In this document: one piece after another, positions 1,692 to 7,600 of the stretch
How the letters are laid out: each line of letters opens with the position of its first letter
Position numbering within the stretch: position 1 is the first letter of the stretch
Assembly: GCA_002269645.1 (NCBI GenBank)
Contig: NIVC01003970.1
Coordinates: forward strand, 3,281 to 67,280
Source: Macrostomum lignano
Taxonomy: Eukaryota
Direction of reading: 5' to 3'
DNA: 64,000 nucleotides
Translations under genes and position numbers: made by a program
The notes under the pieces: generated by a model
Seen by the model: only the letters and a program-made list of their open reading frames with translations
Told to the model about the DNA's origin: nothing
Databases searched by the model: none

Positions 1692-4600
1692 GTCTGTCCT
1701 TGAACTTTGCTTATCTACTTATTGCAAAACTTCCGATGTCTTGAAATTCCGATTCAGTTAGACAATCGGTGGTCTGTAGAACTGTAGCTATTATTAGTTC
1801 TGAATTTTTTTCTAAAATAGATCAATCAGTACATATTGAGGATTTTAACAGACTGATAAGCTGAGAGTCCTTTGCATTTTTACCCTCTTTCAACTTGATA
1901 TTTGCTAACGAATTTAAGACGAGTGCCCGCAAGGCTGGCGGCCGCTCTACAACATCTGCCTCAGGATCGTCCCGTCAGCTCTGGACTGGAACAGTTCGCT
2001 GCAGTACTGCCAGAGCCGCTACTGGAATGGCAAGAATGGCACTCTGTTCATGCCCAAGAGTGCCGTGCTGCGCAACTTCGGTCACATGAGGTGAACTGTG
2101 GTTGAGAAAGTTCATTGGGTATCGAGCCTGTTCAATATTCCTATCTTTACTGCTTATTTTCAATGAAAAACGAAATACTGTATACTCAAAGCTTCAATAT
2201 TATTGTCAATATGCAGCGCCAGAGAGAAAAAACCTGCTTTCTTCTGTTTTACTTAATTCAAGAAAAAAATCAAGCCAATCTTCTTAGGCCGTCAGTTAGC
2301 CTGGTACTGATGCGTTCAATGAGAAATAAAAGAAGAAATTTCACTCAAACAAATCTTGCCTTCCCATTAATTTAGAAACATGCAGTTCCACGTCGGTGCA
2401 TACCGAAACTCTTCAACCGGCCGCTGGTACTGGCTGGATGGAGAAGAAGTTGAGCAGGGAGCATTCTACATGGGCCAGACTCAGAGCAGCTCGTGTGTGT
2501 ACTTGTCTACGGACTACAATGGGCTGTATAGGATCGACTGCTCTGCTAGTTTGTACTTCTTGTGCCAAATTCCCAAGAAGATTTGTGAGTAGGACTTTAT
2601 GCTTTGACCCTATCAAATTGAAATTCTGCTCACGAAGCTGCAATGCAATTCTAGGGCCTGATCGACAGCAGACAGTTGTCCTCAACACATTCTATCACAA
2701 CAACGTTGGGTCAGAAGATGACAACATACAGTACACACAGGGACCTTTGCACGAGTTGCTTAGCCTGTGGGCTTTGGATGAATCGCTCGCATACATACCA
2801 GCTGTTTATGACATTTGGCACTCAGCAAATCTGAACAACTTTGCCATCTCAATCGGCACTGAGAGCGTCCAAAGTGTGACCGGAAAGTACTCAGTGTACC
2901 AAAAAACCCAAATAGAAAATGGTGAGTGACTTAAGTTATGACGGCATGAACCGAATTTATGCACAACTGTAATCCGAATTATGAGGAATAAAACATAAAA
3001 AATATTCGCCAATGCTCAATATAAACTGCTTTGCAGGCTGCCTGGAGCCCCTGTTGTACCCGGAGTCCGGTATAGTTGGAGTTCGCGTTAATGCATCGAC
3101 ATCAAACTCGAGAAGAGGTCCCGAGAAGGCATTCCTGGGATCGGTCATGTCAAAAGAGGGTGAGATATTTATTGTTTACCTTAAGCAGGGAAAATGTTAA
3201 AAAGTGATTAGCTCTCATAAAAATGATTTGCAGAGCACGTGCAGTGCGCACTAAGCCGAGCTGACTACCAGTTCTACGACGGGCAGTGGTCGGTCACTGA
3301 GCAGGGATTCGCCTGTGCAAACTGGGACACTGTGACCAGCACCTACAAGGACTACAACAACACGTGCTTGGAATGTGAGTTTATCGGCCGACATTTCTTT
3401 GGAAAATTGACCATTTACGGGCGTATTTACTCAGCTATATCTAAAGTTTTTGCACAAACATTGTAATTCCGCAAACCCTCTTGCAGATATAACTAGTCGA
3501 TACTCCAGCTGCTACGATCAGGGAGGCGTTATCAGAGACTGCTACGATCTCCAAAAAGCTTACTGCAGTAAGTTGAGATGCCTGATTTACATGTAGTTGA
3601 AACGAATCGGGCTCATAATATTATCAATGTCCATATTTTCCGTTTAACTAGCAATACTTAACTAGCAGGCTGCTACTATGAAAACATATAGAAAAAATTT
3701 TCACACTTACTAAGAAAATGAAGTAAAGATACAAATATAGTACCGCAGATTGTGCGGAACTCGCATTTTTGCAACCTATTTTTTACGCTGGCCTGCCCTT
3801 CCTAAAAATCCCTACGGATGGTAGTAGCGAATAGTTATTCAAGCGAAATAGTTTGTTAGCACCGAAGTCCTGTTTGAAACCATATGCGCCTATTCATGAT
3901 GCTTGATAACAATGACAGCTCGAATTGTTTTAAAATTTCGTGACTCAGGTCAGTACTACCATCCGCCGGCAAGCTATAATTACATCGGCAACATCCTGGT
4001 CGATAAAGTGCTGTACTTTACTGGGATCATGCAGTCTTATAGCATAAATATTAATTATGGATTTTATGTGCACACGGTCGGCGTATCCGTGGCAACACCG
4101 CCCAATAATTGGTGGCTCCTTGCTGATCTCAAGTTGCAGTACCGAATTTCAGCAATCCGTGTCGACCCGTGTAAGCTTATCTATTGTCACATTGAGCCAT
4201 TAAAATTGTTTTTTATGTTTAAAGTGATTTCATCCTCTTAAAACGTATTGTAAGAAGCGAAAACAGTGCTTTAAAGTATTGCAAAATCATTGCAGATCGA
4301 AACCTATACAATGTGAGCTTCAGGACCAGCAACTCGTGGAATCGTAGCCTCGGTGACCTGGCCTTTGAGAACTGGGACACCTGCTTCAACTGGAACTTTG
4401 TGGAACCGCTGTCAATTTACGCCTCATTTATTACTTGCGACACGCCTCAGACTGCTCGCTATTTGGTGCTGGTTAGCCCTGTCAATAACGTTGGGAGTGC
4501 TCGCATGGACATCAACTACATCAATGTAATGGGAGATGAAGGTAAGCTCACTAACCACATAATATACGAGCTAGTTAAGAATCATTAATAGAAGAAAGCG

Positions 4601-7600
4601 AATTCGTGACGTCTAATACTTCTTACTCAATTCCAGTGAATGAGATGGGAGCTGAGGCCGATCTCAGAAAGCTTTACCGACTTCCGAAGTCGCTGGTTGA
4701 GAGCGCCTTGCGGACTGGCAACCTGACTTTCTACATTCGATTAAACAGTGCGGGACTTCAGCTTCTGTTCTCTGCTTATTATGCCGAGTCTGACATCATG
4801 AGACAGGTATGTTTTTCCCGTCTTTTGTTCTATTAAAATAAATCTTTAAGCTCCCAAAACCTACCAAAAAGCATCACCAACCTTGCATGTAGTACATTTT
4901 TCTACTCAAATGCATTCGTTCACATACGATAATATATTCATTGCATCAATAAAGCGAAAGTGATTTGCTGTTTCTCGTTACCGATACCTCGTAAAAAGTT
5001 CATCGGGTTGTGCTGTGACCCGCAGAAACGCTACGAGTTCGACCTCAATGCCAATGGAACCGCTCTGTGGCTGGCGGCGGCTGCCATTCGCCAGGGTGAT
5101 TTTTACGGATCCAACCGCCAAACAGTTGGGGATATCAGTCTTAGGCAGCTGGCACCTGTGGCTGCTGACACAGAGGAATACCTGCCTCTCACCATCACCT
5201 GGACTGACTGCAATACCTTCAACTGCTCCATCTACTTCACTTGCAACGGACAGGACATTGGCTTTGGCGTGGTCTTGGCCAGTGACTCAATCAACTTCAC
5301 CTCAGTTTCATATCTTGCTCTGGTTTCTGAAAGTGTGTACACTGGACCTCGAGTTATGTACGACATGCCAAGTGAGCCAGAGAAATCCATCAAAGTCTCT
5401 TTGCTAGTAACTCAAACTGCAGTACTTAATACAGAAATTTATCACAAAAATCCACTGTATTTAGGTTCGCGATACCTCGGATTTTGGAGCCCGCCTACAG
5501 TATATGGGATAAGCGCGGGAACTGGTTACCGAGATTATATTCAGGTGAAACACAAGCTTTCACACTTGTTCACAGTTTTGTGGCACAATATTGAACACAT
5601 CAAGTTACGTACAATCGTAATCATACTTCTGTGCTTTAGGCGTGGTTTGACGACTTCGTGACTCTGTACGTACTCAGCATTCAAGCCGGCAGTAGCCGTT
5701 TTGATACCTGCTCCGCCTGCATAGCTTACATGCATCATGTGCAGCTGACCTATAGCTCTGATAACTTGGCCTACTCAGCTTATCCTCACGTAAGTTGTTT
5801 TAGCTTGCGCTGATTCTGCCGCAGAAACTTCACTTCGATCAGTGTAAGAGTGCGTCAGTTACCGTTACCACACTGTCTTTCAGTACATTTCCGGCTCGTA
5901 CAACAAGGGAGATATGGTGTCCAGCTACCGACTGGTTCCAGAGATTCACGCGCTTACATTCCGAGTCTACGCATACGATTACAACAGCCGTGCCGAGATT
6001 CGCTGGATGCTTTACGGCTGCAAGAGATGTGAGACTGTGCATTGTTTTAATTATAAAACTTGGTGTTGCTTCTGCTATCTTTGTGATCGAGTGATATATT
6101 GGTGGAGTGCTTTCTGTTGAAGCTTCAGTACGGCTGCCTGGTTTTAATGCAGCTCGTAGTTGTACTCGTAGCTATTTTCAGCTGTCAAATCAAACGAAAA
6201 ACTGACCTAAATATGAAAACAATTTTCCACTTCAGCCAAGTACAACGTGCAGTTCCAGCAGCCAGTCATCATCTCAAACTACCAGACTGTTCGAAGCTCA
6301 GGAGTGACTTCCTACAGTGAGAGAGGAGTTATTGACCAGAATCGGTCTCCATCATTCGGGTCGGGGTGCTGGAGACACTACCATGTCAATGCATACATCA
6401 CTATCGATCTTGTATATCCAAGATACATTGACAAAGTGTATGTATGGGCTCAAACCAATGATGACAGTGGTGAGCTAATAAACCAATTTTGTGTTCTTCA
6501 GCCAATAGTTAAAACCAACAAGACATCCAACTATAAGTTAATTATAAAACTTTCAGGAGTGATAACGAATGAAGTTAACAAGTTCTCCAAGCTGTATGTT
6601 TCAAACTCGTCATATTCTGGAAGCTCTGGGATCGTTGTTGACAAAATCGGCGATGCTGTCGTGCCCCAGCCTTGGCTCGTCAAGGTGGCTCGGGTAAGTT
6701 TCCTGTGCTCTCAGTTCTGTTGCTCTTACTAAACTGTTTATAGAGCCGACTGTGTTGTCGACGGATCGAGAATTTTGAACACCAAAATTTACTTTAGCCG
6801 GCAAGATTCGTCGGAGTTGGCAGCTACTCTGGAAGCACAGTTTATTATACGATTTGCGAGATCGAAGTTTACGGGTACCCGCTTGGTGAGTTGCAGTTTC
6901 TGGTAGCTAATCTACCAGAGCGAAAAACACTGGCTGTCTACATCTGCTGTCTGTCTTTTGTCTGACAGACAAAATTGTCTGTAGCTATCAAAATATAATT
7001 TTAAATCCTCAAAAGTTCGATTTGTGTTTGCCCATTTCGGCTTCGCCTAAGTTAAACAAAATACTATAAACAACATCAATATAAATTATGCCCATCTTTG
7101 AATCAATCAGGCAGCCCAGGTGACCAGTTGTCAGAGTTGGTGACAGTCCGCACCGGCCTGGGCTCCCGGTATCCGGCCACAGCTGCGAGAGCCAGCCGGG
7201 TGTACCCGTACAACGGCCTCACCGGCGATGTGTATTCGCTGCCGCTTGAGTTCGTTAGTGACGAGGCCTTTAACTTTGCCCTATACCTGTACGGGAACGG
7301 CTACTTTGATGTGTACCTTCCTTGCGTCTACACTGTCACTGGCTTCATTATACAAGGCTCATCCATGACTTATCCTTACTATGGGCGCTTCGTTTCCTTG
7401 CGCATTCTGTACGCCTACGAAAAGCGCCACGATATGCTGATGTACTACAGGGACCTGGAGACTAACGGAGCTGTAAGTCTCATAAATTGATTAGCCACTT
7501 TAGGACCAGGGCCGGCTATACTTAAGCGTTGGATTTACGGGGTTCTGAGGGTCCTGAAAGCCGATTAAAATCAGCAGGGATATTCAGGATCTTACCTTTT

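Follow-up and report, generated by a model that had tools for sequence, protein, structure and literature searches.

Discoidin domains probably split at the same surface loop in four units of a giant lectin-like gene from the flatworm Macrostomum lignano

Four times in a giant lectin-like gene of Macrostomum lignano, 365 to 402 amino acids (aa) of other domains separate the two parts of a discoidin (F5/8 type C) domain, each time at the same surface loop. The gene lies in a 64,000-nucleotide stretch of contig NIVC01003970.1 (assembly GCA_002269645.1, positions 3,281 to 67,280 of the forward strand), which we refer to as the window. From sequence comparison and structure modeling, we favor, with a probability of roughly 65%, the reading that each of the four units contains one discoidin domain that is split in this loop and completed after a multi-domain cargo, probably via exon shuffling. 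The split-discoidin observation had been made in a first-pass annotation of the letters, and we confirmed it computationally.

Results

Architecture of the four units

All four units are on the plus strand, at positions 3037 to 6028 (U2), 9934 to 19179 (U3), 23773 to 27508 (U4), and 52626 to 55387 (U1), and in the window sequence an open spliced frame runs through AG/GT sites across all of their exons (33 of 33). Each unit consists of a stub exon of 123 to 129 nt encoding 40 to 42 aa, the insert, and a C-terminal half (C-half) of 119 to 125 aa. The first-pass annotation had placed isolated phase-1 stub exons of about 40 aa at 52626, 3037, 9934, and 23773, and they were found at exactly these positions, flanked by AG/GT and in phase 1 at both ends; the C-halves likewise start as claimed, at 54948, 5465, about 18426 (inside exon 18078–18488), and 26262, and the 350 to 400 aa said to separate the halves measured 365 to 402. 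Both halves are thus encoded in order on one predicted polypeptide around the insert, as judged from the open spliced frame in four of four units and in agreement with the UniRef models P0001 and P0004. Instead of the contiguous stretch of about 150 residues typical of F5/8 type C domains, the units have 365 to 402 aa separating canonical position about 38 from position 40.

The U2 stub exon (CLEPLLYPESGIVGVRVNASTSNSRRGPEKAFLGSVMSKE; 3037–3159, 123 nt, AG/GT, phase 1-1) is the proposed discoidin N-terminal segment, comprising a Cys, β1, and the spike-1 region. It is followed by a kringle-like domain with six Cys (3234–3567; exons 3234–3374 and 3487–3567, each phase 1-1), a fucolectin/FTP-like, galactose-binding-like domain (3949–4541; exons 3949–4170 and 4296–4541, each phase 1-1), and a third domain of about 170 aa (4637–5371; exons 4637–4806, phase 1-0, and 5026–5371, phase 0-1), whose open frame is conserved in paralogues. 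The U2 C-half (SSRYLGFWSPP...MLYGCKR), assigned by profile and hhalign matches, occupies 5465–6028 (exons 5465–5544, 5640–5789, and 5884–6028). U3 repeats this order, with a stub exon at 9934–10056 (AG/GT, 123 nt, phase 1-1), a cargo of kringle-like, FTP-like, and third domains in a spliced frame at 10128–18425, and a C-half at 18426–19179, the first part of which lies within exon 18078–18488 along with the end of the cargo. The U3 cargo also includes a 6.7-kb intron filled by 6.4 kb of a 145-bp satellite.

In U4, the stub exon (23773–23895, AG/GT, 123 nt, phase 1-1) precedes a cargo of a different kind (23971–26094), composed of a LamG-like exon (23971–24507) and a Cys-rich exon (25537–26094), each in phase 1-1. 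The U4 C-half (26262–27508; exons 26262–26488 and 27365–27508) matched PF00754 at 21.9 bits over profile positions 25 to 119. The last of these exons continues into an intact discoidin-like domain. Finally, U1 has a stub exon without the N-terminal Cys (52626–52754, AG/GT, 129 nt, phase 1-1), a kringle-like, FTP-like, and third-domain cargo (52841–54874), and a C-half (54948–55387) that ends in ...MLYGRLAD and therefore lacks the C-terminal Cys. A signal-peptide exon was sought upstream of 50329, and none was found there.

Module boundaries are in phase 1 throughout the units, which fits the exon shuffling proposed in the first-pass annotation. Stub exons, every kringle-like exon, every FTP-like exon, and both U4 cargo exons are 1-1, and the third cargo domain is 1-0 followed by 0-1; the modules have phase-1 introns on both sides, as expected of exon-shuffled class 1-1 modules.

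Pairing of the halves

Hidden Markov models (HMMs) derived from the stub and C-half sequences were run against all 2,061 six-frame open reading frames (ORFs) of the window. The scan returned only the four stub/C-half pairs and a near-identical fifth pair at 60782–63757, a duplicate of 3037–6028; no unpaired stub or C-half was present among these ORFs, so the earlier claim that the halves never occur unpaired holds in the window. Outside it, the M. lignano UniRef gene models P0001, P0004, P0006, P0008, and P0010 have the same order, stub, then kringle-like domain and onward, and in P0004 the whole unit falls inside one matched stretch. The multi-domain unit was seen in M. lignano alone.

The C-half as a truncated discoidin domain

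A C-half profile searched against the PDB retrieved the discoidin structures of factor V (FV), factor VIII (FVIII), neuropilin, and CASPR2 with an E value of 5e-15, and the alignment ran from about chain residue 43 to 47 to the end, so that the first ~40 discoidin residues are missing. In hhalign, the C-half fell on canonical discoidin positions 40 to 151 (P of ~1e-16). These profile comparisons clearly identify the C-half as a discoidin domain without its first ~40 residues. When whole units, concatenates, C-halves, and stubs were searched with Pfam, all F5_F8_type_C (PF00754) matches found were below the gathering score, the best reaching 22.5 bits (concatenate of stub and C-half, U4) against a cut-off of 28.2, and U1 and U2 gave no match to it.

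The stub as the missing N-terminal segment

HMMER is too insensitive for a 40-aa stub, and we therefore used hhalign with a shuffle null. The stub family aligned with canonical positions 1 to 38/46 with scores of 15.7 to 19.4 (P of 0.003 to 0.02), whereas column shuffles gave a mean of 9 (standard deviation, 1.9) and reached the observed score in 0 to 1 of 300 trials. The concatenate aligned end to end with positions 1 to 151 and scored 102 to 104 (P of ~3e-17 to 8e-17), compared with 93 to 95 for the C-half by itself. When windows were slid along the whole unit, the stub was the best match to the N-terminal part of the canonical discoidin domain; the 45 aa directly upstream of the C-half, considered as another source of the missing strands, scored at background and were rejected. 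The similarity of the stub to the discoidin N terminus is thus only weakly recognizable at the sequence level.

The two terminal Cys vary together. The pair occurs in U2, U3, and U4, and both members are missing from U1; among paralogues, the pair is absent from P0004 and P0017 and present in P0001, P0002, P0008, and P0011. Together with the complementary hhalign positions and the discoidin fold predicted below, this co-variation supports the view that the stub and C-half are complementary halves of one discoidin domain.

A different explanation, which we consider unlikely, is that the stub is a conserved linker or relic outside the fold, and that the C-half is an N-terminally truncated discoidin domain able to fold by itself or with an edge strand taken from a neighboring domain. 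HMMER saw no similarity of the stub to discoidin N termini: a stub profile had no match in the PDB at E of ≤10, and a canonical N-terminal HMM recovered no stub among the 2,061 window ORFs, the stubs scoring −2.3 to 2.6 bits. Nor was the concatenate consistently above the C-half in HMMER. The comparison with PF00754 suggested in the first-pass annotation went against its expectation, with a gain of only 0.6 to 0.9 bits and no match in two of the four units, and against PDB sequences the concatenate gained in some cases and lost in others; with FV and FVIII, the C-half alone scored higher. Moreover, strand order places β1 at the edge of its sheet (PMC3320712), and a truncated domain might therefore fold without it; stub residues 21 to 40 were also modeled at low confidence. 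However, in hhalign the stub falls precisely on the missing positions, with a score beyond 299 to 300 of 300 shuffles, and neither the rest of the unit nor the segment upstream of the C-half supplies a better candidate. In addition, the module abutting the C-half in U4 is Cys-rich, both terminal Cys are kept or lost together, and stub size and phase are conserved across units sharing only about 25% identity and in divergent paralogues.

Structure model of the joined halves

AlphaFold2 was given an artificial concatenate of stub and C-half without the cargo, with an alignment in which canonical (outside) rows covered the C-half columns only, split-codon junction residues were dropped, and rows were split. 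A first run with just the four window sequences was poor (pLDDT, 56.7). The final run, which was made without a negative control, gave five concordant models with a pLDDT of 79.3 and a pTM of 0.78; stub residues 1 to 20 were modeled at about 79 pLDDT and residues 21 to 40 at only about 61. The top Foldseek matches of the artificial-concatenate model were all discoidin domains (TM score, 0.66 to 0.76; root mean square deviation, 2.4 to 4.8 Å), whose fold is an eight-stranded jelly-roll β-sandwich; TM scores were 0.70 to 0.76 when normalized to targets of 153 to 160 residues. Thus, the stub and C-half are predicted to adopt a discoidin fold together without outside information on the stub.

The insertion site

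The "ARL" motif and the "GAW" strand flank the break, which is in the β1-β2 connection or "spike 2" loop, in accordance with the spike loop named as the insertion site in the first-pass annotation. The R2080 loop forms spike 2 in the C2 domain of factor Va (PMC11257402), and the DS-like domain of DDR1 has an insertion between β1 and β2 (PMC3320712). DDR1 DS-like is a discoidin-fold domain with a long insertion at the same connection (PMC3320712); there the insertion is five extra strands that are part of one domain, whereas the M. lignano units carry 365 to 402 aa in two or three apparently separate modules on their own phase 1-1 exons. The canonical F5/8 type C domains (factor V/VIII C1/C2, neuropilin b1/b2, CASPR2, lactadherin, and discoidin II) resemble the units in sequence, with C-half E values down to 5e-15, in the superposition of the modeled concatenate (TM score, 0.70 to 0.76), and in the terminal Cys pair found in three of the four units. 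They differ in being contiguous, while the M. lignano units fall below the Pfam gathering threshold and have the spike-2 loop replaced by cargo.

The cargo domains

The first-pass annotation had read the cargo of three units as kringle, fucolectin, and Methyltransf_FA. The first two assignments survive as marginal similarities. A kringle-like profile from the three units matched the kringles of HGF, angiostatin, and prothrombin in the PDB (E of 5e-4 to 0.3) over its first 33 residues only, and the six Cys are present in U2; Pfam Kringle had no match in the units or paralogues, and the UniRef name of the paralogue P0006 is "Kringle domain-containing." The fucolectin/FTP-like domain matched fucolectin (PDB 1k12; E of 0.038) and, below threshold, PF22633 (E of 0.035 in U2 and 7.8e-4), and the multi-FTP protein P0025 matched the FTP-like part of the profile with an E of 3.5e-5. 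The third domain had no Pfam or PDB sequence match, and the Methyltransf_FA label was dropped, as PF12248 gave no match at E of ≤10 in the three units or at E of ≤1 in paralogues. Similarly, of LamG, PAN-like, and kringle in U4, a subthreshold Laminin_G_3 match of the LamG-like exon remained (E of 0.006), PAN and kringle had no match, and a phmmer search of the U4 cargo against the PDB returned no sequence match.

Splicing and integrity of the locus

The cargo exons could instead be optional cassettes, such that the stub spliced to the C-half gives an ordinary discoidin domain and the nested form is minor or an artifact of gene prediction. We judge this improbable. In U1, U2, and U4, every cargo module is phase symmetric, which permits in-frame skipping; gene models also differ, P0003 omitting the U1 stub exon. 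In U3, however, a single exon (18078–18488) encodes both the last cargo domain and the start of the C-half, and the cargo cannot be cleanly removed. Furthermore, the stub is followed by cargo in five independent UniRef models, with the whole unit in P0004, and units and paralogues have conserved reading frames in the cargo. That the pattern comes from a decaying or misassembled locus is very improbable: window positions 1 to 6270 are repeated at 57457–64000, where one-base gaps, the only differences in the second copy of U2 (60782–63757, plus strand), shift the frame of 6 of 10 exons, and one intron holds the 6.4-kb satellite, but U1 to U4 are open over 33 exons, all with canonical splice sites, the lack of any substitution (0) in the second copy points to sequencing indel error, and paralogous M. 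lignano proteins elsewhere share the architecture.

Discussion

Under the split-discoidin reading that we prefer, the chain would leave the discoidin fold after β1 and spike 1, at the loop whose homologue in the factor V C2 domain is spike 2, and run through the cargo, which is kringle-like, fucolectin-like, and third domain in U1 to U3 and LamG-like plus Cys-rich region in U4. It would then return and complete the β-sandwich, with closure by a putative N-to-C terminal disulfide. The discoidin termini would sit together at the end of the barrel opposite the insertion; therefore, the main chain would run past the discoidin base, in the order C-type lectin, discoidin, FTP-like, discoidin-like, and so on, with the cargo branching off sideways at the ligand-binding end. 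On this reading, the halves would co-fold in the native protein, its shape would be branched, and it may have a multivalent glycan-binding or adhesion role. We also rejected a link to Mlig-ap1 and Mlig-ap2, known adhesive proteins of M. lignano; the words "kringle" and "discoidin" are absent from the main text of the paper describing them.

The arrangement most likely arose through exon shuffling that brought phase 1-1 modules into a phase-1 intron located within the discoidin domain, followed by copying with the unit; this order of events is our inference. The site may also have been reused, as the first-pass annotation suggested from the two different cargoes. A more far-reaching proposal, to which we give little credence at present, is that the spike-2-loop intron is a reusable docking site for phase 1-1 cassettes, with the branch displayed at the ligand-binding end and skippable in three of the four units, so that plain and branched discoidin domains might be made from one gene.

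Insertions that halve a domain are known from other folds. In phospholipase C-γ, a split PH domain carries SH2-SH2-SH3 in a loop, and syntrophin also has a split PH domain; in both, a small β-sandwich is halved by a multi-domain insert and the halves reassociate. These are intracellular signaling proteins with a fold unrelated to discoidin, and they are not known to have repeated units or to carry two kinds of cargo at a single position. The integrin β subunit, with β-I inside hybrid inside PSI domain, is an extracellular case of "Russian-doll" nesting; it involves other folds and single-domain inserts and is ancient and conserved across animals. To our knowledge, multi-domain inserts in a small extracellular β-sandwich are rare, and a limited literature search found no published multi-domain insert in a discoidin domain.

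The finding concerns one flatworm lineage and was made by computation. If the halves co-fold, some 400 residues can be accommodated in the β1-β2 connection, a place where the DDR DS-like domain also has an expansion, which would be relevant to discoidin scaffold engineering. The units would then also clearly exemplify exon shuffling that targeted an intron within a domain and not one at a domain boundary, and the membrane- or ligand-binding loop of factor V, factor VIII, and DDR-type discoidin domains would have become a branching point.

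Exon structure of the split units

Exon models were built by hand for all four plus-strand units, each of which comprises a stub exon proposed to encode the N-terminal segment of a discoidin (F5/8 type C) domain, an insert or cargo, and a C-half. U2 (3037-6028, 10 exons), U3 (9934-19179, 9 exons), U1 (52626-55387, 9 exons), and U4 (23773-27508, 5 exons) have AG/GT boundaries at 33 of 33 exons, and their frames stay open. The stub exons measure 123, 123, 129, and 123 nt and are phase 1 at both ends; stubs, inserts, and C-halves span 40 to 42, 365 to 402, and 119 to 125 aa, respectively. 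Separate stub and C-half HMMs, run on the 2061 six-frame ORFs of the window, found only the four pairs plus a duplicate at 60782-63757, with no unpaired stub or C-half. Together with the agreement of UniRef gene models, these data bear out the four split units described in the first-pass annotation.

The units are now about 25% identical to one another, and intron loss differs from unit to unit: in U3, the last cargo exon is fused with the first C-half exon (18078-18488), while in U1 the last two C-half exons are fused (55084-55387). The last exon of U4 reads straight through, with no intervening intron, into a discoidin-like domain at 27509-28030 that is intact and contiguous (canonical HMM positions 23-150, 36.7 bits); thus, split and unsplit discoidins adjoin in one gene.

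Two repeats touch these units. The window start (1-6270) recurs at the window end (57457-64000) with 99.1% identity and a period of about 57.5 kb. Compared across the ten exons of U2, the second copy has 16 one-base gaps and 0 substitutions, and 6 of 10 exons are frame-shifted; this copy has the look of errors in unpolished long reads or of redundant assembly, not of a diverged pseudogene. A 145-bp satellite at 11477-17857 (44 copies, 99% identical) takes up the 6.7-kb U3 intron and extends 30 nt into exon 17828-17994. Its repeat unit includes the polypyrimidine tract, where the TRF consensus is cut off, and translates like the start of that exon, so that each copy seems to carry a tract, an AG acceptor, and the first exon bases, giving about 44 decoy acceptors.

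The C-half as a discoidin domain

A profile of the four C-halves matched structures of factor V, factor VIII, neuropilin, CASPR2, DDR, and discoidin II, the lowest E value being 5e-15. Where the matched chain has a single domain, the alignment always begins at residue ~43-47 and reaches the chain end. Similarly, hhalign placed the C-half on positions 40-151 of a 151-position, Cys-to-Cys canonical discoidin profile that represents proteins of cnidarians, hemichordates, and vertebrates (P about 1e-16). Because of these starting points, the C-half is, as judged from sequence, a discoidin domain without its first ~40 residues. Pfam gave only sub-threshold scores (maximum 22.5 bits versus a cut-off of 28.2) and no match for U1 and U2.

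Identity of the stub

The identity of the stub is the weak point of the split-discoidin case, and the tests gave mixed results. The stub profile had no match in PDB at E<=10, and an HMM covering the first 40 canonical positions recovered none of the stubs among the window ORFs; stub scores against it were -2.3 to 2.6 bits, with only the '(I/F)-x-A-S-S' motif aligned. Joining the stub to the C-half without the cargo (the concatenate) brought a gain of only 0.6-0.9 bits in Pfam. Among PDB sequences, the stub added 1-3 bits for some (CASPR2, neuropilin-1, DDR1, and discoidin II) but lowered the score for factor V and factor VIII. By this HMMER comparison, the check proposed in the first-pass annotation, the claim that stub and C-half form one discoidin domain gains no support.

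In profile-profile comparisons, the stub family (7-9 sequences, paralogues included) fell in register on canonical positions 1-38 or 1-46, with Cys on Cys, PLL on xLG, and 'v-tASS' on 'qItASS'. Scores were 15.7-19.4 (P 0.003-0.02), compared to a mean of 9.0 (sd 1.9) for column-shuffled controls, which reached the observed score in 0, 1, and 1 of 300 shuffles. The concatenate covered positions 1-151 over 147 columns and scored 102.3-103.6 versus 92.7-95.5 for the C-half alone, and in sliding 45-column windows no other part of the whole unit matched the canonical N-part as well as the stub. The neighbouring cargo was rejected as a source of the missing discoidin part, since the 45-residue stretch that immediately precedes the C-half scored at background.

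In discoidin domains, the first and last Cys are joined by a disulfide. Both terminal Cys occur in U2, U3, and U4 and neither in U1; among UniRef paralogues, they are absent in P0004 and P0017 and present in P0001, P0002, P0008, and P0011. This joint presence or absence is of the expected kind, though it probably reflects one evolutionary event.

Structure prediction was applied to the concatenate only, without cargo. The model from four sequences was poor (pLDDT 56.7). A second alignment added 46 canonical discoidin sequences trimmed to the C-half; stub columns 1-38 hold Macrostomum rows alone and the canonical rows start at ~39-41, so it carries almost no outside information on the stub. The resulting five models were concordant (pLDDT 79.3, pTM 0.78); 'VRVNA' forms a strand and 'PEKA' a short helix, and the mean pLDDT per block was 80 and 78 in stub residues 1-20 and 63 and 60 in residues 21-40. 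The best Foldseek matches were all discoidin domains (TM 0.70-0.76, normalised to 153-160-residue targets, over 154-182 alignment columns). The model supports a stub compatible with the discoidin fold.

Break site and cargo

The junction lies in the beta1-beta2 connection, after the 'ARL' motif and before the 'GAW' strand. By our own residue count, it corresponds to spike 2 of the factor V C2 domain, the membrane-inserting R2080 loop (PMC11257402). Since the DDR1 DS-like domain has a long insertion of five extra strands separating beta1 from beta2 (PMC3320712), the break site is a known permissive site; it sits at the end of the barrel that binds ligand, with the joined termini at the other end.

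The cargo domain labels are weak. The kringle label draws on a PDB profile match covering 33 residues (E=5e-4), the presence of six Cys, and the UniRef name of P0006; the fucolectin (FTP) label draws on 1k12 (E=0.038), a below-threshold PF22633 score, and the FTP-repeat protein P0025 (E=3.5e-5). The 'Methyltransf_FA-like' assignment of the third domain found no match at all and is unsupported. The sole match of the U4 cargo was Laminin_G_3 (E=0.006).

The gene and its relatives

A very large mosaic gene lies on the plus strand; it shows a higher-order repeat of C-type lectin, split-discoidin unit, FTP-like domain, and discoidin-like domain, in that order, with copies at 1900-8500, 8900-21800, 22100-28000, and 50300-57400. 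Most of its domains have Pfam scores below threshold. The window is of eukaryotic origin: the spliced protein of 3037-6028 matched M. lignano proteins only (P0001, 85% identity; P0002, 96%), and the UniRef protein P0005 holds the U2 C-half and the sequence after it letter for letter as in our exon model. The unit profile had 27 matches at E<=0.001 among 1.84 billion representative proteins. Among 12 hits checked for source or sequence, those matching more than one module were all from M. lignano, and those from other phyla matched one module each; by representative search and cluster look-up, the multi-domain relatives are all UniRef entries of M. lignano. The stub-then-cargo order is common to P0001, P0004, P0006, P0008, and P0010, and P0004 (A0A1I8HHG8) covers unit profile positions 4-559 in a single stretch.

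Two gene models show irregularities. In P0004 (residues 1-1400), what resembles, by eye, reverse-transcriptase or retroelement sequence is fused to a lectin and split-discoidin unit, probably a prediction artefact. P0003, compared with window 50329-50972 and 52626-52957, joins the exon after the first C-type lectin domain straight to the kringle-like exon of U1, skipping the U1 stub exon. Over its first 220 residues, P0003 is only ~53% identical to the window, whereas the next kringle-like exon is 100% identical; thus, this model may be chimeric or derived from a paralogue.

Origin and implications

Phase-1 module boundaries are a classical signature of exon shuffling, and every module boundary here is phase 1, consistent with the exon shuffling proposed in the first-pass annotation. 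In the simplest history, an ancestral discoidin whose spike-2 loop contained a phase-1 intron would have received cassettes in that intron, and the unit would then have been duplicated; the differing cargo of U4 may have entered by a second insertion or replaced another cargo. With such phase symmetry, the cargo could be skipped in frame. In U3 at least, exon 18078-18488 encodes both the last cargo domain and the beginning of the C-half, and the linkage there is therefore obligatory.

A limited literature text search found no report of a domain nested in a discoidin domain. Nested domains as such are already known, as in the split PH domain of PLC-gamma and in integrin beta; the DDR DS-like insertion is a further case. 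Given these precedents, we rate the proposed multi-domain split of discoidin as a variant on them. The domain types lead us to infer that the protein is branched in shape and plays a multivalent part in carbohydrate binding or adhesion.
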